64,000 nucleotides of DNA from positions 10,974,001 through 11,038,000 of the forward strand of contig NC_135264.1 in NCBI RefSeq assembly GCF_964204865.1. Direction: 5' to 3'. The stretch is from Styela clava. Lineage: Eukaryota. The position numbers were made by a program, and so were the translations under genes. Below the pieces are notes generated by a model, which made no database searches, was not told where the DNA came from, and was given only the letters and a program-made list of their open reading frames with translations. Shown here piece after piece: positions 1-17,200 of this stretch (positions are counted from its first letter, which is position 1; each line of letters starts with the position of its first letter).

Positions 1-3000
1 TTCTTGATGTCATTGTTTAGCCATTTCACATCAATTAGAACACTGTAGAATGAATTATGTTAAAAGCTAACCAGTTAAAAACTACTTCTAAACATTTTCA
101 TGGCATATGAATTTATTATAAGGCAACATAAGGTAACTGAACTTGAATCACCTTTTCATCGTAGCCATAACGTAGTCCCCTCTTGGCTTTGGTTGCTGAA
201 TCGCGGACGTTTTAACTTTTGCTTCCAATACTCCCTGTATTTTTAATTGCAATCCGTAAATTTCTGAAGCGAGTTGCCAGTCAGGATCCAAGTCCACTAT
301 AGCTACAGGGGAGGTTTCTGCCAATAAAATGATGAATGATTAAGTATCGCGGAAGTAAAGCAGGCGACGCCGCCATGAGAAACGTCTTATTAAAACTTGT
401 AGGTTTCATCAATTTCATTATGTTGAAAATATCCATTTGAAATCGTATTATGTTCGCTTCAAAAGTACTGTGGCCGTTGTTTTGGCAACATAAGATTTTC
501 CTCTTGATACTGAATCTGATTTACCTTTTATTTCACTTCCAATGATGCTGTCATTGGTAGAATATTCACCATTTTCTCTAACCAGTGCTGTCACTTTAGC
601 GTCTATGTGAAATCTTCCACTTCCGTCTGGATTCCAATTTGTAGTTCCGGTCTCGTAACCGCCATCCTGTACAGAGAATAGCAAAAGCTTCAGCAATATA
701 TTTGCAGTTACCTGTACAAAATGTACCTTTGATACAAATACAACAGTATTTTCTGGAATATACATTTTTCCTGAAAAAAAAAAAACGTCGAGGTCTGAAC
801 TGAAAAGCACAAACATGAGATACACAATCATGCTTTAAATTTCACAACTGCCAATTCCACGTTTGATATGAAATTAACACCCGAAATCCCAAAATCAGAC
901 GTCTTTCGATTTTTTAAATATACTTAGTTTCCAAATATACGCTATTAAAATGTCAAGCATCACTACCTTTCTTGTCAAGATTTCTATATCTTCTTTTATA
1001 TTCGGAGCCGTGAATCTCTTGTTGACGTAATTACATCTTACATTATTTATGGTATTGACGTCAGCAGTAAATTGTCCGTAAAAATGCATTCGAGGAAATG
1101 AAAGATAACCTGGATATAACGTATGATAGTAAAGATTTCGTATGATATTTTATGCTATATTTTTAAACGTATAATAAACAATCATGCCTGTAGGAAGCGC
1201 GGTGTTGCACTGAAAACTGAGGTATTGAAATTCAAATGATGTGGATATGGATTTAATTAATCAATTGTTTATTGATCATTGTTAACTGTTAACCTACTTT
1301 TGGGCTCGGATAGAGTTTTGATCTGCATATAATACTAGCCCTAGGTATTCCCGTAGCTTACAAAAATAATATAAATATCTTTTACCGGTTCTGATAAAAA
1401 AAAATTGAAACTATGGTATCGTATATTAAGATTCAAATTACTACTTTTCAGTACGGCTTCCCTTGAAACATTGACGTGGCAACGCATTGTGTAATGTGTT
1501 ACGTGACTCCAATCACGAATTCTTGCACAACTATATATAGTCGTTTAGTTTCACTGTTTCACAGCAAGTGCTAAAGTAAATATGCGGGAACGTCCTTGGT
1601 AATTTTGGATTACTGAGATTTATAAAATGGGGCACATGTTGTATGTGGTTACCAGTGTGAAAAGAGATTACTTGGGCAAAACTTGATAAAGCATGGTCTT
1701 GTTTCATTGCTGCGGCACTCATCCATTCCACTAATGCAAATCCATCTTTGATATCCAGACCCACAAGAAGTACTGCATTGTGACCAGTATCCATAGAGTT
1801 TCTACAAAAAATAGGGTAATGAATTTAGTATATTTTTTCAAATTTACTAATAGCTTGTGAAGCAACATGAGTCAATGACGTTGTAGGGTAAAACGTATGA
1901 GAAGCTGACACAAATAAATGAGTTGCTCACGCACTATTTTATTGAACCCCGTCGCATTTTATATTTTTAATTTTATTAAAAGTTTTGCATTGCAACATTT
2001 GGCATGGCACTAGAAAGGAAGAATTAAAAGCAATCTAGTGTTATTTTCAAATTGCACCTCATCACTTTCAATAATCAAAAAAAAAAACGCCAATCTATCT
2101 CATTTGGCATGGGACTTGAAAGGAAGAATTGAAAGCAATCTAGTGCTATTTTTAAATCATATCTCATCACTTCTTTTAATCACAAAAGAACGCCAATCTA
2201 TCTCATTAGGGAAATAAGTAATAATGCAAATAATTCGCTCGCTAAATGCAACAAAATTTAATGATTACGTGCGTTTTTAAGCATATTGCATTATAATGAC
2301 TACATAAACAAATGAAAGAATCGTGACGTATTTGAGAAAAAGATGGAAATTTTTTGGGAAATGTGACGACATTATTACAATTTCCACTTTTCATCGATAG
2401 GTTACTTACTATGGTATTCAAAACATGGCGTGCCTGTTTCAATAGTAGTAGTGAGGTTTTGATTGATTGCGACGAAATAAAAGAGTGAAAAAGCTTTTGA
2501 TATTAACAATTTGATGATAATTGTGCTAAATGACCATTTATAAACGAAGTGAGGTATTCTCGGAATCATCATTCATTTCATTTGAGCAAAATTACTTTAA
2601 AATAAAAATGCAACGCAAACATTTTGCGAACAAATTTGGAAATTGAATCCTAAGAAATTCGAAACGAAATTGAAATTCCAATGTAAAAAAATTAAGGTCT
2701 TTTATCAATAGTTGGACGGGAATATAGTTTCATAACGGTAGGCTATTAACGACAATAAATAATCATATGATAAATCATTGTTCAAATTATTTTAACCATT
2801 ATGTATCACATTAACGAGCAAATAGACTTCCGGGAATAGAAATAACTTCCGGCCACGTTAGCTAAAAATAAAACACATCTAAATGAAAATATAATGTTTA
2901 GTCGTTTGGCTGAAAGTACGGAATAATCAGTAAATTCAACACCAAAAATAAAGGTTGAATTGTTTATACACTTGGTTTAATCTATCGATGGATATGAAAA

Positions 3001-5289
3001 ATTACTACGGCAAAATAAATCTAAATTTTATGACTTTGTTTCGTAGCATTTTTCTACAGTATGATTATGTTAATTATGATTGATAGTTAAGTATTTTGCG
3101 TGTCAGCCCGCGGTGATCAGTTTCACTATAGTGATGGGCACTTTTGATTTATGATTGATTTAAGTCACAATCTCACACCACCACACGACATAAGTAATGC
3201 TGCTGCACAAATTTGCAAAAAGCGCGAATTCGCGATGTGACAGATTTCCCCTATTCACAATTATCGTATGTGCCCCAATTATGAAATATAAATTAGTTTT
3301 AACTTATTGTTTCACTTATTTGTTTCTAACGAGTTTGACAATATGGTAGTCAATCGCGATTTACTTTGCAATTATCGTTATTGGGAAAAATCCACTTTAA
3401 CGTACTTATTGGCACAAAATCAACTAGAATTTGAAGAATGGTTCAAAATAAATAGTGACTTTGTGGTTGTTAAATTTCCTAGTGTATAACAATTTTTAAT
3501 TCTTCTATAATTACATATCGTAGGAGAAACGGGTAACGTTGTTTAGTGAGATGAAAACTGGTGGGTGTAAATTGCTATGCTCAACATATAGACACAAACC
3601 TTTTTCGCGTGTACCAGAGTTGAATCTCTATTATCCGGATGTTCGCCAAATTTATCTGAAAAATTAACGAAATCCCAATACAAAACATGTTCTTGAAGAT
3701 TTTTACGGAAATCATAAAATAGCCATCATTTTTACCTAATAGTGTAACTTTGGCTAAAAATCATGAACATTTTTCTGTGTTTTTACACTTTACCTATAAT
3801 GAAACTATGTACTAGCTACGATGATTTGCAATTACATCAAAATACTTGATGCTATATTACTCACTCGACTGCTAAAATTAAAATTTTGCAATAATTTTTT
3901 TCATTTTTGTAAAAATTTTTGAGATTTCAAATATATATTTCGACAATCGCTGTATGTATATGCAATGCAACATAGATGAGGCGGGTCGCCATTTTTTATT
4001 ATATCACCAAGGAAACGAACGCTACGCCCTTGTTAGCGCTTTTCAGTAACCAAAACCAGTTGTAATGGCTTTCAGTCAGAATGGCAAATCGAATGTACAT
4101 TTCCAAACAGTCAAATTCGTATTGCCTTCAAATACAATACGTCTAGATCAGGGATGCCAAACTTTTTCAGCTTGCGGCACACTAACAACAACATTGAAAA
4201 GTCGCGGCACACTTCTTACAAATCGGTTTTATTAAATCCCTTATTTGTAAATAATATTCGTTTCGGCAGTAAATGGGATTAAAACAAGATTTTTTGGGTC
4301 AATTGTAACAAGTCTTTATCGTTTTTATTTTTTTCTGTCAGCGCATAAAATTAATATTTGCAAAATCATGAAAATGTTATTGGAATTTTTTTTTTTTTGT
4401 ACTGTATATATTGTATTGCCTATGTTGTACTGATATACTGATAGAAAATTTGCATGGCAAAATTTGGGGTAAAATTAACTGGAAATATTTCATGTGAAAA
4501 ATTATAAAAATAATATCAATTCAAAAGTCTCTTCAATTTCTTAACTGCTGGCATTTTAAAAAAGATTATCTAGTTAAAATCTCGCGACTTTGTTTTGAGC
4601 GAACTTGCATTGCTGGGTTGGGGTCGAAAATGTATAATGCCTTATATATTAGAGAATTGTGGCATATTTTACATCACCCATCGATGGACAGAATAATAAA
4701 TCTTTTTACAGGGTGATACAATAAAACGATATTCATACAATATGTTCCAAATGGACTAGGATCCGATTTTTGGGTCAGCCTATATATGTGTGGTACCGAA
4801 CTACACCCATTACTGATTGCAATGTAATAAAGTTCATGTTACAGTGCTGATTATTGTGAAAAAATCTCGGGAATTTTGTGAAAATTTGCGACAAACTTTC
4901 AAGACCTTGGCGGCACGCTAGTGTGCCGTGGCACACAGTTTGGGAAACCCTGGCCTAGATGCTACCCACCCCGAGATAAATGTTTCTTTCGCTACTCCTC
5001 ACGTCAATCAAAATTAGACAAAAATAAAATTACGCAAAGGGTGTCATCTTTATGAAATATTCTTATTGTCCTGGTCTACATAGAAACCGTGTCAACAAAT
5101 TTTAAATTCTATTACACTTAATGTTTGTAATACACCAGTAAAACAAATTGTTTCTAAAAGCTGGAAAACTCTAGGATCAAAAAGTTGAATGTACTCACCT
5201 ATTTCATGACTTTCTAGCCATGAGTTGTTTTCAGTACAAAGAAATGTTGCAAAAATTACTACAACGTGCACTAAGTTTAAAATCTCCAT
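1..5289 (-). CDS. Partial multi-exon gene: signal peptide + thrombospondin type-1 repeat + VioB/RebD/StaD-like N-terminal domain (continues beyond the left edge)
   Basis: Phase-consistent GT-AG exons on the minus strand. Core exons: 1801-1672 (KLYGYWSQCSTSCGSGYQRWICISGMDECRSNETRPCFIKFCP, TSP1 WSxCSxSCG motif), 1109-967 (SYLSFPRMHFYGQFTADVNTINN...), 666-525 (...NWNPDGSGRFHIDAKVT...DSIIG), 317-152 (...IVDLDPDWQLASEIYGLQL...), 42-<1 (SVLIDVKW...). Less certain 5' exons: 5289-5199 (MEILNLVHVVVIFATFLC..., GTGAGT donor), 3655-3615 and an optional 24-nt exon 2433-2410. The family call rests on recalled motifs, not a search. Confidence 0.75.
1996..2205. repeat. Two-copy ~105-bp tandem duplication in an intron
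   Basis: catttggcatgg...aaaggaagaatt...gcaatctagtg...acgccaatctatct occurs at 1996 and again at 2101. Confidence 0.9.
4149..4952. mobile_element. Non-autonomous hAT-type element (MITE)
   Basis: Ends CAGGGATGCCAAAC / GTTTGGGAAACCCTG, subterminal gcggcac motifs, 8-bp TSD GTCTAGAT/GCCTAGAT. Confidence 0.85.
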
Positions 5290-7859: not shown

Positions 7860-10800
7860 TTATTTTGAAAGCATTGACGTTGACGAGAAGGTTGGAACAC
7901 CAGTGCTGCCAGTATCACGCGCTGTAACAATATTTACCGACGAAGGCTTTCGTGTTATTCTTCGTCTTATAGAAGCTCTAACTTCTACGGTTTTATTAAA
8001 AAGAGCCGCTCGAGCAATAGAAAACCCACTCGAGTAAATGATTGGATTCAATGAACTATTTATGGGTAGCAGAAGAATCGCCGCCACAGCATACGCGTCC
8101 CCAGAGATATGCGCTCCAAGTTGGCTTGCGAGAGCCATAATGCAAATTGGAAGCCAGCAGCAGAGATCAGTTGCAATTAAAATCGTTATTTTTCTTTGCA
8201 TTGCTCGACTTCGATTTTCGTGTGTAGTTTCGCTGCCCACGACTTCATTGTGTGTGGACTTGTGGTAAATCTTACAGTATGCAATGATGATAAACATCAA
8301 GCTACAGAAATTTAGGCTTATTATGAACAAGGATAGTGCATGTAGAGGCAGCTCTCCTTTTATTCTAAATAGCCTAGGAATGCATACCCCGTCGGCACTG
8401 TAGAAGCCAAAGTATCCGAGCACTTCAGGAGCAACATCTGCATAGGTATTTTTCAGAATATCTTCAGCGCTCCCCCAAGTGTTAAAGTCGTTTGATGCGT
8501 GAGATGCACGGGCTCCGAGAACAACAATTCGTTGTGCAAATGTTTTGAAATCATCCCAAGATACGACTGTGTTTTCAAGGTACATCGACGGTCTTGTTAG
8601 TGCTGTAGTAACCGTGGTTTGATTAATCGATGGAATAATTGGGGTTAAGGCTAATATAATAGACAATGCCCATGTTGTAATTGCTGTCACGACAGCCCAT
8701 TTCGGTTTTGCATGTCTGCTTTGAAACGGTCGGTGAATTCCATAAAAACGATACACAGTCAAAGCTACGAGAGAAAACACGGATGTTTCACTGGACAAAA
8801 CAGTCATAACTCCAATTGCGTTACATAGTCCACTCATCCGCCATTTTTTGTCTTCCAAACAATATTCTCCAGACATTGAAACTGACTTCACTCCTATTAC
8901 AAGCAGTGTTACCCCCATGAGAAAGTCAGAAAATGCAAGATTCATAATTAATATCCTGTTGCAACGACTCATTGAACTTGATTGAGACTTGATTTCGGAG
9001 TAATAGGTTTCTATTATTACACCTATGTTACCAAGAATTGCTATACATGCCATGAACCAAATGAAATGCCGAAGAAATGGTAGTTTAATCATTTCCTCTG
9101 GGGAAGATAGTGGGTTTTCGTCGTTCCAATTATCTGGGCATTCGTCTGAATTGTCGTCACAGTCCTGTTTACCGTTCATTACTGATGAATATGGAATGTA
9201 AAGAGGGTTCCCGTCTTTACAATAGAAGTGAGTCAACTTACTGCAATTTCTTTCGTCTGACTGATCTAGGCAGTCTGGATGTAAATCGCACACTTTAGTG
9301 GGTTTGATGGCGATACGCTGAAACGAAGTACGTAAATGTAATTTAATATAACGCATTAAGAAAAGTAGCTATTAACAAATAACAACATAAGGATATTTAC
9401 GATGTATTCTATCACTCTTCAGATAAAGGTAAATGACAAACGATTGTGTATATAAGCCAAATTTATGTTAGCAAACAAATATCTATTTTATATTTAGGAA
9501 TGGTATATCACTGTTCAACTTGATGTAAAACAAAATCAGCAAAGTATACCAACCTGTCTTGTACCCAAAGGTGATTCTACAGTCCCGGCGTCGCACTTAA
9601 AATTTTCTGTGCAGTTTTGTTCATCCTCCCCGCCGTTACATTCTTGTATGCCATCGCATATGGATCGACCAAACACAAAGTTGGTGTAATCGTACCTATT
9701 TTCCGTAGTCGCATAATCGATGCATCTGCAAAAATAATTTCCATAGTTTTAATATTTTGGATAGATATATATATAAAATATACGAAACGAAGAGCTAACT
9801 TACGTCCGTACTTCCATTGCTACTTTTGCCCCGATGATTGATTCCCTTGGACTAATGTTTTTCAGTTGAAATGTTTCGCATTCTGGCATCTGACATTCTT
9901 CATTGCATTCATCCTCAAATCGTGGACAATCAAAAACGCCGTCACATCTTGTTGGTTAAAATTTTTAATGCTATCATATGTGAATACGATAACGATTGTT
10001 AAGGCAGAAACTTAGGGTAGGTGTGACAATGCCACTTTTACTTAGCGCTAGCGCAATAATATCCAAGTACAAGAGAGCGATGCTCAAATATATGGACACG
10101 AAGTGGTACCGGTCACACAATAGCCTACTGGTACCGTGTCGCAGCTGAGCAACAGATTTGAACTTACACGAAAGCGGGACCGCCACATGGAGGGGACTTT
10201 TAAATTTTGATGGCGTCTTCGCACACAAAAAACGAATCCCATAGGATAGGGCCTAGAGGTCACAAAATATTTGAGATAAATAAAAGTAATGGTCTTAATA
10301 ATTTTGAAGCAATTGGTCCAGTAGTTAATGAGAGAAGCGATTCTTTCGCAACAAGAAGAAGTCGAGAAATACGAGCATGATGAACAACAACAAAATAAGA
10401 AAACGATTCATAGGTTCATTTCGTGTCCAATAATTTAAGTAAAGCACTCAGATTCAATGAAGTATGATGAGATTGCTAGTAATTCAGAAAGAATTAGGAA
10501 AGCAAATATATATAAATTTTATTCATTATTGATTGCCATTGCCATCAACTTATAGAACTGTATTTCCTCGGGGAAGGATTTTATCTTTCAGATGATACGA
10601 TATATATACCCATAATCTACTTACTTTGTACCGTCTGTTGCATATATATTTTCGTATATTTCCATTAGGTTGAAAGCTTTCAATACATTTAATATGGCGT
10701 CGCTGATTTTCCAACATTTAAAATCGGTCGTATTTGATTTTAAACCGACTTCTGCTTCTGGTTGAACGCATAATTTTTCATCAAGAGCAGAAATTGTACA

Positions 10801-13318
10801 ATCTATAACACCGTCACATATTTTAAAGCGATTCACGCACATTTTGTCTTCTTTGCAATATAATTCTCCAGTTCGACAGTTGTTTTCACAATTTCCAGCG
10901 TTGTAGCAAATTGAATCGCAGAATTTCATTAGATTGGTGTTGTTGCGGTTCGAATTACAAAGGCATTCATCTGATAAATCTGTGCAGTCAATGACGCCGT
11001 CGCACATTTGTCGTCGTGCTATAATTTTGTTATCGGAGACGCAACGTGCGCAATTAAAGGACCCATTCTGGAAACATAAGTCCGATTTATCTTCGCACAG
11101 AGTGTGGTTATCGTACAGTGTCCATTGTGGTATGTTACACATTTCTTCCTTTGTTCCCAGAACAGTCTTTTTACATTCAAATCCTGGCAAATATTGAGGA
11201 TTGTCCTTCCCCGCTGGACAATCTCGGAATCCATCACACGCGTATGACTGGGGTATGCAAATTGATGGGTCATGAGGGCACCTCCACATACGTGCTTCAT
11301 TGCATCCTTCTATTTCATCGCTACAATCTCCACAGTGATCCATTCCATCACATAAATATTTTAACGCGATGCATCTTCGCCCGCTGTGACAACGAAATTC
11401 GTTCGATGAGCAAGTTTGATTCCAAGATATCACTTCATCACTTCCGTCTTTACAATTTTCAACTCCGTCTACAACCCAAGACCGCGGGATACATCTTCCA
11501 CTATCATTGCAACGAAATTCTGTTGTAGTTACGCATTGGGTTAAGTTTTTTCTTTCGTCAGCACCATTTTCGCAATCTGGATGGCCGTCCTTCACACGAA
11601 ATCGTTTTACACACTGCCCGTTGTCACATCGGAATTCTGCAGATTCGTTGCAAGAACTGAACGGTTCATTTTCATCTTCACCAGTTTTGCAATCATTCAT
11701 TTTATCAAAAACCCATTCTCTAGGAATACACCTCCCATTAGAACACTTGAATTCAGTTTCATTGCAATAATCAAGTGACGCCATTTCATCGCTGTCGTCA
11801 TCAACTTCGGTAGTTTTGCAATCGATGTTGCCATCTCTCACAACCCATCTCGGCAAACATAGCCTGCTGTGCTTGCATGTAAATTCTGAGTAAATAAGTT
11901 GACTATATACTAAAATTGATTACCGGTGAAAAAACTTCGTAAAATAATCGTTTTATGTGAAGAAAATATTAAACGATACAAAGGATGATTCCGTACACAG
12001 TATGGGCATTGAATAAAAACCGTTTTTACCATGTTCTGATGAACTGCATGATTTATTATTTTAGACAAACTTAATGCGTCAAAGCTGGCGTGTTTCATAT
12101 GATTATTATGAACCACATGTTTACATCCACACTGGAAAGCAATTGTTAGCTAGTAGCAAATTCAATTATATCCAGTTTTTGTTGAAGTTAGTCAAGTCAC
12201 GATTTTATTGAAATTAGTTATAGAGGAATTACAGCTCGATAATAAAGTAAACATACAACTTCATACTCTTTGCCTTAATACAGTTTCTTGATAAATATAA
12301 AAGGCACATAATATAAAAAACTTCGGAAGTGATAAGCAAGTTTGGCAAGTTTTCCATATTAAACTGCCTTTAACAAAATGGCGATACTGTATATTTACAA
12401 TGTACCATCGGATCTGCATGGCAAAGTGATGACTCCCTTTTTCCCCAGAAGACAGCCTTGCTTGGTCCCTAGCAACATTCTTGGTATACATCGGTTTATC
12501 CCGCGACATGCAAATTCATCATCTGTACAATTCACCCTTTCTGTTATGTACAAAAATATGAATGTATTATATCGCCACTTATTACACCATATGTTACCGT
12601 TTACTCTTTCTGGAAGTGGATTTGTTGATATCAGGTCCGAGAAATATAGATACAGGTAGGCCTACCTCACATCTACCATGGTTATTTCAGACTTCTTTAT
12701 TTTATGAGAATTGGGGTTCTGATTTCAGTATAGTTTGTTCCATTGATACAAAATATATGGACCGAGCTCACTCTACCAATTTATTTATATTCCCCGTTAT
12801 ATTTTCACATACCACTCCGAAAACAGGCGTGTTAGAATATGAAGTATAACCGAATAATTCTTTTAAAAATGCGCTTGAAAAAAAAACAGGCTTAATGCTG
12901 ACCTTTCTCGCAATAAGTTTTAAATACACCATCACGCCTTTGACATCGTCCGGTTAAAGAACACCTGTGATAACCATCTTCTATTCGACAGCCCGCGCGA
13001 AGTCTTCGTACGTTCAGAGAGTTGACTTTGACTGCAAAAACACCACGTTTTGCAAATTACTAATGGCTGAAAAAGTTTGTAATGCGGAGCTACAGATGAA
13101 AAATTTAAAATACTATTGAAGGTACGATCTTTGGATAAAAGACGTTTCGAAATATCGCTGGTTCGACTGTTATCCCAGCCCACTACCTTTTATCAAGAGA
13201 CAGCATGAAAGTACAACTGAATCTCTTTACTGGGTTTTGCAGGTCTACCAAACTTACCATAAACATTGATGCTGTGTAGAACAACTATATATAAAAGTAA
13301 CTTATAGAAACAAAACAT
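7860..13318 (-). CDS. LDLa-repeat GPCR copy A (GRL101/RXFP-like 7TM, no LRRs), 1119 aa
   Basis: Exons 13318-13258 (signal peptide MFCFYKLLLYIVVLHSINVY), 13031-12903, 12540-12406, 11885-10625, 9947-9804, 9725-9554, 9317-7860 = 3360 nt in frame, all GT-AG. About 13-15 LDLa-like modules. 7TM motifs GN (TM1), NLAFSDFLMG, FYSADGVC, TDLCCWLP, PINSSLNPIIY. Confidence 0.93.
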
Positions 13319-14288: not shown

Positions 14289-17200
14289 CTACTGTTGTAC
14301 AGTAGATATACTTGCTAATTTTGAAGGCATTGACGTTGATGCGAAGGTTGGAACACTTGTGCTGCCAGTATCGCGCGCTGTAACAGTATTTTCCAAGGGA
14401 GGTTTTCGTGTCATTTTTTGTCTCATAGAAGCTCTAACTTCTACGGTTTTATTAAAGAGGGCAGCTCGAGTAATGGCAAACCCACTCGAGTATATGATCG
14501 GATTTAATGAACTATTTATGGGTAGAAGAAGAATCGCCGCGACAGCATACGCGTCCCCAGAGATATGCGCTCCAAGTTGGCTTGCAAGAGCCATAATGCA
14601 AATTGGAAGCCAGCAGCAGAGATCAGTTGCAATTAAAATCGTTATTTTTCTTTGGATCGCTCGACTTCGATTCTCGTGTTTAGCTTCGCTGCCCTTGACT
14701 TTCCTATGCGTGGACTTGTGGTAAATTTTACCGTATGCAATGATGATGAACATCAAGCTACAGAAATTTAGACTTATTATGAACAAGGATAGCGCGTGTA
14801 GGGGCAGCTCTCCTTTTATTCGAAATAGCCTAGGAATGCATACTCCGTCAGCACTGTAGAAGCCAAAGTATCCGAGCACTTCCGGAGTAACATCTCCGTA
14901 GGTATTTTTTAGAATATCTCCTGCACTACCCCAAGTGTTAAAGTCGTTTGATGCTTGAGATTCACGGGCTCCAAGAACAGCAATTCGTTGTGCAAAAGTT
15001 TTGAAATCATCCCAAGATACGACTGTGTTTTCAAAGTACATTGACGGCCTTGTTAGTGCTGTAGTAACCATGGTTTGATTAATCGATGGAATAATGGGGG
15101 TTAAGGCTAATAGAATAGACAATGCCCATGTTGTAATTGCTGCCACGACAGCCCATTTCGGTTTTGCATGTCTGCTTTGAAACGGTCGGTGAATTCCATA
15201 AAAACGATACACAGTCAAAGCTACAAGAGAAAACACGGATGTTTCACTGGACAACACAGTCATAACTCCAATTGCGTTACATAGTCCACTGATCCGCCAT
15301 TTTTTGTCTTCCAAACAATATTCTCCAGACATTGAAACTGACCTCACTCCAATTACAAGCAGTGTTACCCCCATGAGAAAGTCAGAAAATGCGAGATTGA
15401 TAATTAATATTCTGTTGCATCGACTCAATGCACTTGATTGAGACTTGATCTCGGAGTAATAGGTTTCTATTATTACACCTATGTTACCAAGAATTGCTAT
15501 ACATGCCATGAACCAAATGAAATGCCGAAGAAATGGTAGTTTAATCATTTCCTCTGGGGAAGATAGTGGGTTTTCGTCGTTCCAATTATCTGGGCATTCG
15601 TCTGAATTGTCGTCGCAATCTTGTTTACCATTCATTACTGATGAATATGGAACGTAAAGTGGGTTCCCGTCTTTACAGTAGAAGTGAGTCAAGTTACTGC
15701 AATTTCTTTCGTCTGACTGATCTAGGCAGTCTGGATGTAAATCGCACACTTTAGTGGGTTTGATGGCGATACGCTGAAACGAATATGTACGTAAATGTAA
15801 TTCACTATAACGCATCAAGAAAAGTAGGTATTATCTAACAACAACATAAATGTATTCTATCCTATACTCTTCAGATCCGGGTAAATTTGTAATGACAGCC
15901 GCTTGTGCATTTAAGCCAAATATGAGAGGGCGCGAAAATTAATTTTAAGTTTCGAGTTGCTGATATCAGACAGAATCTTTATTTTTTCCAGTCACCAACA
16001 CACTACTCACTACAATAAAAACTTCCTACGTAAACATTATTCATAACCAAAAGCGCGCTCTGCTCCGATCAAATTTCTGTTGGCAGACAAATATCTAAAT
16101 TATATTTATGGATGATATATCATTATTTAGACTCTATGTAAAACAAAACACGTAAAATATACTAACCTGTCTTGTACCCAAAGGTGATTCTACGGTACCA
16201 GCGTCGCACTTAAAATTTTCTGTGCAGTTTTGTTCATCCTCCCCACCGTTACATTCTTGTATGCCATCGCATATTGATTGGCCAAAGACATAATTAGTGA
16301 AATCGTACGTATCTTTTGTTGTCGCATATTCGTTACATCTGCAAATATATTTTCCTTGAGTGTTTATATTTTCAATAAAATTTATTCACGAATATGATGA
16401 GCTAACTTACGATCGTAATAACATTGCTGCATCTACCCCGACGATTGATGCCATTAGTCCAATGTTTCTCAGTTGAAATTTTTTGCATTCTGGCATCTGA
16501 CATTCATCATTACATTCATCCTCGAATCGAAGACAATCAAAAACGCCGTCACATCTTGTTGGTTAAAAACAATTTTAATGGTATCATATTATGCGAACAC
16601 GATTGTTTAATCAGAGATGCCATCTCTTAAATATCGTACAACACTTAATTAGGAACATGTATCCAAATTATTCACAATATCCTAATATATGCGGAGTGAA
16701 GCACTCAGATTCATTATAGTACGGCGAGATTTCTAGTAATTCGCAAAGAATTCAGAAACCAAATATAAATTTTATTCATTATTATTCAATTATTGTACCA
16801 CCTTGTGGAATTATAGTTCCGTAACAAAAAAACTATCGCGGGAAAAAATTCACCTTTTCAGATAACTAAATTATTTAAAATACGATATGCTCATATTATA
16901 CTTACTTTGTACCGTGTGTTGAAAACAAATTTTCGTATAGTTCCATTAATTTGAAAGCTTCCAATACCTTTAACATGGCTTCGCTCAATTTCCAACATTC
17001 AAAATCGGTCGTATTCGATTTTAAACCGACTTCTGCTTCTGGTTGAACGCATAATTTTTCATCAAGGGCAGAAATTGGACAATCTATAACACCGTCACAT
17101 ATTTTAAAGCTATCCACGCACATTTTGTCTTCTTTGCAATATAATTCTCCAGTTCGACAGTCGTTTTTACAATTTCCAGCGTTGTAGCAAATTGAATCGC

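Follow-up and report, generated by a model that had tools for sequence, protein, structure and literature searches.

To our knowledge, descriptions of the VioB superfamily are confined to pathways for bacterial pigments and alkaloids and to one large bacterial family that is uncharacterised. VioB, StaD and RebD share a two-part layout over their whole length, in which a beta-rich N-terminal part of ~600 amino acids (aa) is followed by a ferritin-like domain of the Pfam family PF12902. The chromopyrrolic acid (CPA) synthases of this superfamily are heme enzymes which couple two tryptophan-derived imines (PMC10851217). Here we analyse LOC120334319, a gene of the ascidian Styela clava whose first exons lie on the minus strand of a 64-kb window (contig C19:10974001-11038000, the whole stretch of DNA analysed, from a genome of 377 Mb), and whose product, judging from its sequence and predicted structure, combines these same two parts with a signal-like peptide and a thrombospondin type-1 (TSP1) repeat.

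Deuterostome genes with microbial relatives form a class described by Simakov et al. 2015 (PMC4729200), who name convergent loss as an alternative explanation for such genes, and the tunicate cellulose synthase and eight Ciona groups of microbial origin were reported by Tamura et al. 2026 (PMC13390645). LOC120334319 resembles the genes of both studies in being an intron-bearing gene for a microbial-type enzyme, placed among animal genes in a deuterostome invertebrate. Neither paper names the animal VioB-like family in its main text, and we found no other paper on it. RefSeq calls the protein 'uncharacterized' and its automatic UniProt name already flags a PF12902-type domain; the sequence itself is already public, and what is new is its reading.

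The explanation that we favour, and consider probable as a whole, is that LOC120334319 is an intact gene for a secreted VioB-superfamily protein, which would have come from an ancient transfer, received a TSP1 insertion in tunicates and now acts as an extracellular oxidative enzyme. The interpretation put forward in an earlier note on this DNA is thereby supported in part: it was right on structure, and wrong only where it implied orthology to VioB/StaD/RebD and a recent transfer.

Relation to VioB, StaD and RebD

As a comparison set we used five true VioB genes from Oxalobacteraceae-type genomes, which score 1779-1908 bits on TIGR04492, the NCBIfam equivalog model for VioB/StaD/RebD (iminophenyl-pyruvate dimer synthase, chromopyrrolic acid synthase; cut-off 1250 bits). 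Alignment of the profile of 14 animal proteins with that of true VioB by hhalign gave a match to the VioB family with a probability of 99.3% (E 4.1e-20, 582 columns), spanning Styela residues 93 to ~755 and VioB residues 2-694, while the ~900-aa bacterial family described below aligned with true VioB over 790 columns (probability 99.9%, E 4e-31). The true VioB proteins begin with M-S-[IL]-L-D-[LF]-P-R-L-H-F-R-G, in agreement with the VioB start described in the earlier note. The Styela protein shares with VioB/StaD/RebD an S-x-L-x-x-P-R-x-H-F-x-G start, a Y-M-P-x-T-R-[DE]-L-S motif and a set of Glu and His residues in the order E/ExxH/E/H. Across animals, two bacterial clades and VioB, 41 columns are conserved, including P98, R99, G104, an M-P-x-x-R-x-L-S motif, E712, E747-x-x-H750, E973 and H991. 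These alignments place the Styela protein in the VioB superfamily, with the N-terminal domain and PF12902 in full-length colinear order.

Residue 93 of the Styela protein, which pairs with residue 2 of VioB and of the bacterial relatives, is the Ser codon split by intron 1671/1110, which bears out the claim that an intron falls exactly at the start of the bacterial proteins.

That the protein belongs to the VioB/RebD/StaD enzyme group proper, as had also been proposed, is not supported. The Styela protein (RefSeq XP_077965494.1, here P0151) scores 20.4 bits on TIGR04492 (E 9e-5), in a single colinear stretch of residues 610-726 against profile positions 516-631, far below the cut-off, and our trees place VioB as an outgroup at a very great distance. 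Both lines argue that the protein is not an orthologue of VioB, StaD or RebD. Identity to these enzymes is only ~20%, and the Styela protein differs from them in being Cys-rich, fused to TSP1, intron-bearing and predicted to be secreted, with no vio/sta/reb-type gene neighbourhood around its gene. Within the 64-kb window we found no gene for a flavin adenine dinucleotide (FAD)-dependent tryptophan oxidase (VioA/StaO/RebO), a P450 or VioE, a genome-wide search of Styela for such partners not having been made.

Ferritin-like domain and predicted structure

Residues 705-999 of the Styela protein match PF12902 over profile positions 1-220 with 136.3 bits (gathering cut-off 22.3, E 1.8e-39). The domain is encoded ~5 kb left of the window by three exons which follow each other in profile order (1-55, 56-114 and 116-220), so that the C-terminal PF12902 domain predicted to lie there by the earlier note is present; the product itself, expected at ~1000 aa, is 1151 aa long.

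An AlphaFold2 model of the whole protein, with a predicted local distance difference test (pLDDT) score of 83.4 and a predicted template modelling (pTM) score of 0.71, is rich in beta strands in its N-terminal part and helical in its C-terminal part. In this model, residues 685-1130 match the ferritin-like protein CC_0557 of Caulobacter (PDB 3HL1) with a Z score of 25.4 and a root-mean-square deviation of 2.8 Å over 264 residues, at 25% identity and with a sequence E-value of 2.5e-9, followed by Dps, bacterioferritin, di-iron and Mn-catalase bundles at Z 8-10. CC_0557 shares this fold and differs from the Styela protein in being an uncharacterised stand-alone domain, without the N-terminal 600 aa.

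The N-terminal domain (residues 93 to ~700) has no Pfam model. When exons 4-6 were searched singly against Pfam and NCBIfam no match was obtained, because the exons are too short and this domain is covered by no model, and the last exon gave only chance matches to PDB sequences.

Signal-like peptide and TSP1 repeat

The product appears to consist of four parts, namely a predicted signal peptide, one TSP1 repeat, the ~600-aa beta-rich domain and the PF12902 ferritin-like domain with a C-terminal extension. Residues 1-22 are hydrophobic and signal-like, with a maximum Kyte-Doolittle value over 10 residues of 3.0 at residue 9 (stretch 9-18). An equivalent hydrophobic stretch is found at the N-terminus of 14 of the 19 animal members, from tunicates, hemichordates and amphioxus; bacterial members begin directly at M-S-Y-L. 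Cys makes up 2.56% of residues in animal members versus 0.62% in the sister bacterial clade, a four-fold difference, and together the hydrophobic N-terminus and the high Cys content suggest secretion.

A TSP1 repeat would be expected to give a Pfam TSP1 match above cut-off and to show the six-Cys W-S-x-C-S-x-x-C-G pattern. In the Styela protein the probable repeat occupies residues ~50-92, encoded by exon 3; it keeps all six Cys and the sequence W-S-Q-C-S-T-S-C-G, and its Pfam scores lie below the cut-offs (see below). The profile of the 14 animal members matches solved thrombospondin-1 repeat structures with E 9.9e-21. The earlier proposal that an animal TSP1 repeat is fused to a bacterial-type VioB-superfamily protein in a host-encoded, spliced gene is supported. 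Among the animal members the repeat is restricted to tunicates, where it always directly abuts the junction between C-P and S-Y-L, and is absent from those of amphioxus and hemichordates.

Exons 2 and 3 of LOC120334319 (56 + 130 nt = 186 nt) form a symmetric phase 1-1 block. In the paralogue LOC120337767 (L005:7707-7859, on C13) the TSP1 repeat is a single symmetric phase 1-1 exon, flanked by a phase-1 signal-peptide exon and a phase-1 first enzyme exon, and the junction intron splits the same Ser codon as in LOC120334319. Judging from these phases, the TSP1 module bears the classical signature of exon shuffling and would be older than the split of the tunicate orders. A comparable arrangement is known from the ADAMTS proteases, secreted TSP1 enzymes which are among the structure matches of the family profile and also carry an animal TSP1 module on the catalytic body of a secreted protein. 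The Styela protein differs from them in that its TSP1 repeat is single and N-terminal, and its putative catalytic body belongs to a bacterial type not otherwise known from animals.

Closest bacterial relatives

To find relatives, we ran the last exon in a full HMMER scan and then used tblastn and phmmer. The closest kin are many bacterial proteins of ~900-1070 aa, colinear with the Styela protein from their residue 2 (Styela 93) to the C-terminus, with full-length phmmer E-values of 1e-60 to 1e-82 (2.6e-82 for P0093); on the DNA, their alignments begin at window position 1107 with bacterial residue 2-5. This bacterial family occupies at least 559 loci in Pseudomonadota, Acidobacteriota, Bacteroidota, Actinomycetota, Chloroflexota, Myxococcota and others, and is annotated only as 'ferritin-like protein'. 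Its members (e.g. MBS0358110.1; Undibacterium, Chitinophaga, Streptomyces, Acidobacteriota) are ~30% identical to the Styela protein, from which they differ in having no signal peptide, TSP1 repeat or introns and few Cys. Many genomes encode the two halves in separate genes side by side, one of ~600-640 aa and a ferritin-like one of ~350-420 aa.

Such a split version was also seen on plasmid pAT1 of Aureibacter tunicatorum (L015:7980-17537), where a 588-aa N-domain gene and a 423-aa ferritin-like gene lie directly upstream of an eboA-eboF cluster. The ebo genes recur in only ~2 loci, and the DHQ-synthase and phosphodiesterase neighbours of the pAT1 copy in only 2-3 other loci.

Among 84 flanking open reading frames (ORFs) at 42 bacterial loci no neighbour is conserved, the commonest families reaching at most 5 of the 84 (aminotransferase). 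No amine oxidase occurs among the 25 commonest neighbour families of these loci, and neither P450 nor VioE-type neighbourhoods recur. By gene neighbourhood, then, nothing appears to link the ~900-aa bacterial family to tryptophan-imine chemistry.

This bears on the idea that the Styela protein is a true functional counterpart of VioB, StaD and RebD, a host enzyme coupling two indole-3-pyruvate imines. Full-length colinear homology, retention of the conserved Glu/His set, the ascidian host and the known heme chemistry of CPA synthases of this type (PMC10851217) all speak for it, and if it were true, the bis-indole or indolocarbazole compounds of ascidians and acorn worms would owe their synthesis at least in part to the host. 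However, the low TIGR04492 score, the remote position of VioB, the neighbourhoods of the nearest bacterial family and the lack of a partner tryptophan oxidase in the window count against it, as does the predicted secretion, the known pathway being cytoplasmic. Given the distance to CPA synthases, the missing partner genes and the extracellular setting, indole-imine coupling is therefore quite unlikely here, and the implication for ascidian indolocarbazoles drawn in the earlier note is only a speculative lead, as membership of the enzyme group is unsupported.

Distribution in animals and origin

Homologues were found in the tunicates Styela (five loci), Ciona (at least six genes) and Clavelina, in the cephalochordates Branchiostoma floridae, B. 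lanceolatum and B. belcheri, and in the hemichordates Ptychodera, Glandiceps and Saccoglossus. Orthologues in Ciona include LOC100184225, LOC100181841, LOC100180317 and LOC100186290. Large, though non-exhaustive, homologue searches returned no other eukaryote, whether fungal, protist or protostome, and no echinoderm member.

Trees rooted on VioB were built with LG+G4 on 63 rows (an alignment of 905 columns) and with LG+C20 PMSF on 40 rows. In both, the animal proteins group with two rows that lack a source name in a single clade (support 99), which is sister to the main bacterial clade, clade A (support 94-95), while a second bacterial clade and VioB lie outside. The branch to VioB is very long, and as outgroup VioB lies 2 x 2.1 substitutions per site away. 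The hosts of the two rows, P0018 (MetaClust, 998 aa) and P0017 (Logan, 901 aa), could widen the animal range of the family; at the N-terminus of P0018 there is an unrelated extension of 125 aa, which may be a gene-model fusion.

Since a single clade spanning tunicates, amphioxus and hemichordates is nested in bacteria, any transfer must be ancient. Recent or ascidian-specific horizontal gene transfer, the former proposed in the earlier note, is refuted by this clade. The trees fit one old transfer, presumably from a bacterium to a deuterostome, which would have taken place at or close to the deuterostome stem and been followed by loss in vertebrates.

Alternatively, the family could be an old one that eukaryotes inherited vertically and lost many times. 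The animals are monophyletic, the branching order within their clade would suit an old age, and convergent loss has been named as an alternative for such genes (PMC4729200). Yet every non-animal relative with a named source is bacterial, these coming from many phyla, the animals nest between two bacterial clades when VioB is the root, and the large, non-exhaustive searches gave no fungal, protist or protostome member. We regard vertical inheritance as unlikely and continue to favour an ancient transfer.

Gene structure and genomic locus

The observation of five exons in window 1-1801 (-) is confirmed. These minus-strand exons (coding exons 3-7, Table 1) all have an AG acceptor and a GT donor with compatible phases, and their translations are identical to the RefSeq protein XP_077965494.1 of 1151 aa. 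A tblastn search with this protein recovers the same five exons and two further coding exons upstream in the window. The gene as a whole has ~17 coding exons spanning ~11.8 kb, with ~16 GT-AG introns and a frame open over its full length, and extends left past the window edge to a stop codon at L003:3487-3489 (C19:10967487-10967489). The spliced model was searched one exon at a time, and all whole-protein analyses were done on the RefSeq protein.

Table 1 Coding exons of LOC120334319 in window coordinates (L003, segment to the left of the window).
Feature	Position	Strand	Content
Coding exon 1	5199..5289	-	Start codon, followed by a hydrophobic, signal-like peptide; codes for residues 1-30 and 1 further base; phase 1 at its end; donor GTGAGT
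Coding exon 2	3600..3655	-	19-residue linker, phase 1 to phase 0; tblastn residues 31-49 at 100% identity; AG/GT borders
Coding exon 3	1672..1801	-	Thrombospondin type-1 repeat, six Cys; ends in phase 1 within the Ser codon that opens the enzyme part
Coding exon 4	967..1109	-	Start of the N-terminal VioB-superfamily domain; motif S-Y-L-x-F-P-R-x-H-F-x-G ... N-N
Coding exon 5	525..666	-	N-terminal domain; W-N-P-D-G-S-G motif
Coding exon 6	152..317	-	N-terminal domain; V-D-L-D-P-D motif
Coding exon 7, start only	1..42	-	Rest left of the window
~10 more exons, left of the window			Rest of the N-terminal domain and PF12902 (L003:5028-5273, 4750-4953, 3490-4479)

Five loci in the Styela genome carry both gene ends, LOC120334319 and four paralogues. 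Two of the paralogues (C13:8172614-8182089 and 8186209-8195140) form a tandem duplication, arranged head to tail inside ~23 kb, and the other copies are at C13:2.17-2.18 Mb and C13:11.163-11.171 Mb. Immediately upstream of LOC120334319 are tandem genes for G-protein-coupled receptors (GPCRs) with low-density lipoprotein (LDL)-receptor class A (LDLa) repeats. They comprise two near-identical large ORFs (window 7863-9368 and 14292-15830, both on the minus strand), each with an LDLa repeat and a rhodopsin-type seven-transmembrane domain, and a further exon with at least four LDLa repeats (10624-11919, -), all by Pfam. The intron that directly precedes the TSP1 exon contains a ~110-base direct repeat in two copies (window 1990-2215, -; ending ...catgccaaatg, then agatagattggcgtt...), an observation made by eye.

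As the nearest non-animal relatives are bacterial, one might suspect contamination with bacterial DNA, an artefact of the assembly or a dead pseudogene. The gene lies, however, within an 18.7-Mb contig and is flanked by animal genes, the LDLa-GPCRs; it has its many GT-AG introns, an AT-rich animal composition (36% GC) and a long open frame, together with four paralogues and with orthologues in other chordate genomes. These readings are effectively refuted and were rejected.

Proposed function

We infer metal binding, catalysis and a role for the TSP1 repeat from what was observed of gene structure, architecture, homology, distribution and residue conservation. The most likely role, by analogy, is that of an extracellular metal-dependent (di-metal and/or heme) oxidative enzyme. 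The simplest origin would be one ancient transfer from a bacterium to a deuterostome, after which the gene would have gained introns, a signal peptide and many cysteines, and in the tunicate stem the TSP1 module would have been inserted by exon shuffling between signal peptide and enzyme. E712, E747, H750, E973 and H991, all five of them conserved between VioB and the animal proteins, may bind metal, and the protein would act outside the cell as an oxidative enzyme, in analogy to the oxidative C-C coupling by VioB/StaD/RebD, perhaps tethered by its TSP1 repeat to matrix or cell-surface glycans.

Several points weigh against this interpretation. The splice junctions are taken from the RefSeq model and from homology. 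The TSP1 exon of LOC120334319 scores below the Pfam cut-offs (23.5 bits on PF19035, cut-off 27; 11.9 bits on PF00090, cut-off 21.6), although its paralogues, at 24-35 bits, exceed that of PF00090. At E997, which animals and bacteria keep, VioB has Ala. No solved structure resembles the N-terminal domain above noise: P0183, a bacterial homologue consisting of the N-domain only, was folded (pLDDT 86) as a test of the N-terminal fold, and its model gave only weak Foldseek matches (TM at most 0.17), to macroglobulin- and immunoglobulin (Ig)-like arrays, and a best VIA Z score of 5.8. The model is longer than 400 aa, and this lack of a structural match is therefore not evidence of a new fold. Finally, P0017 and P0018 fall inside the animal clade, and both a 'deuterostome-only' range and a 'single transfer' are provisional, the genome-wide search having covered Styela only.

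A predicted signal peptide, a TSP1 repeat and many cysteines would also suit a domesticated, catalytically inert matrix or adhesion protein, in which the bacterial-type body is a scaffold presented by TSP1, and the N-terminal region, given its weak Foldseek matches, resembles a string of beta-sandwich domains. However, the five Glu and His residues and 36 other columns are kept across animals, bacteria and VioB, which is unexpected for a mere scaffold, and the amphioxus and hemichordate members keep the same core without TSP1. Because the putative ligand residues are conserved, we hold an inert scaffold to be improbable, and an extracellular oxidative enzyme remains our preferred reading.

What such an enzyme might act on is a matter for more daring speculation. 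Ascidians, lancelets and acorn worms could conceivably run an extracellular, VioB-type oxidative coupling of imines or enamines derived from aromatic amino acids, a proposal to which we give little credence. If it were true, a host enzyme, itself of bacterial origin and acquired on the deuterostome stem, would make or complete some of the bis-indole or related pigments and alkaloids that are at present attributed to symbionts.

The full-length architecture of the VioB superfamily is a stable, multi-copy and intron-bearing component of chordate and hemichordate genomes. The animal version appears to have been re-tooled for secretion, as predicted from its N-terminus, and in tunicates to have been fused to TSP1 by exon shuffling, and the family is a clean candidate for an ancient transfer from bacteria to deuterostomes. 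It also offers a concrete protein with which to ask whether hosts may contribute oxidative chemistry to the metabolites, tunic or mucus of marine invertebrates.

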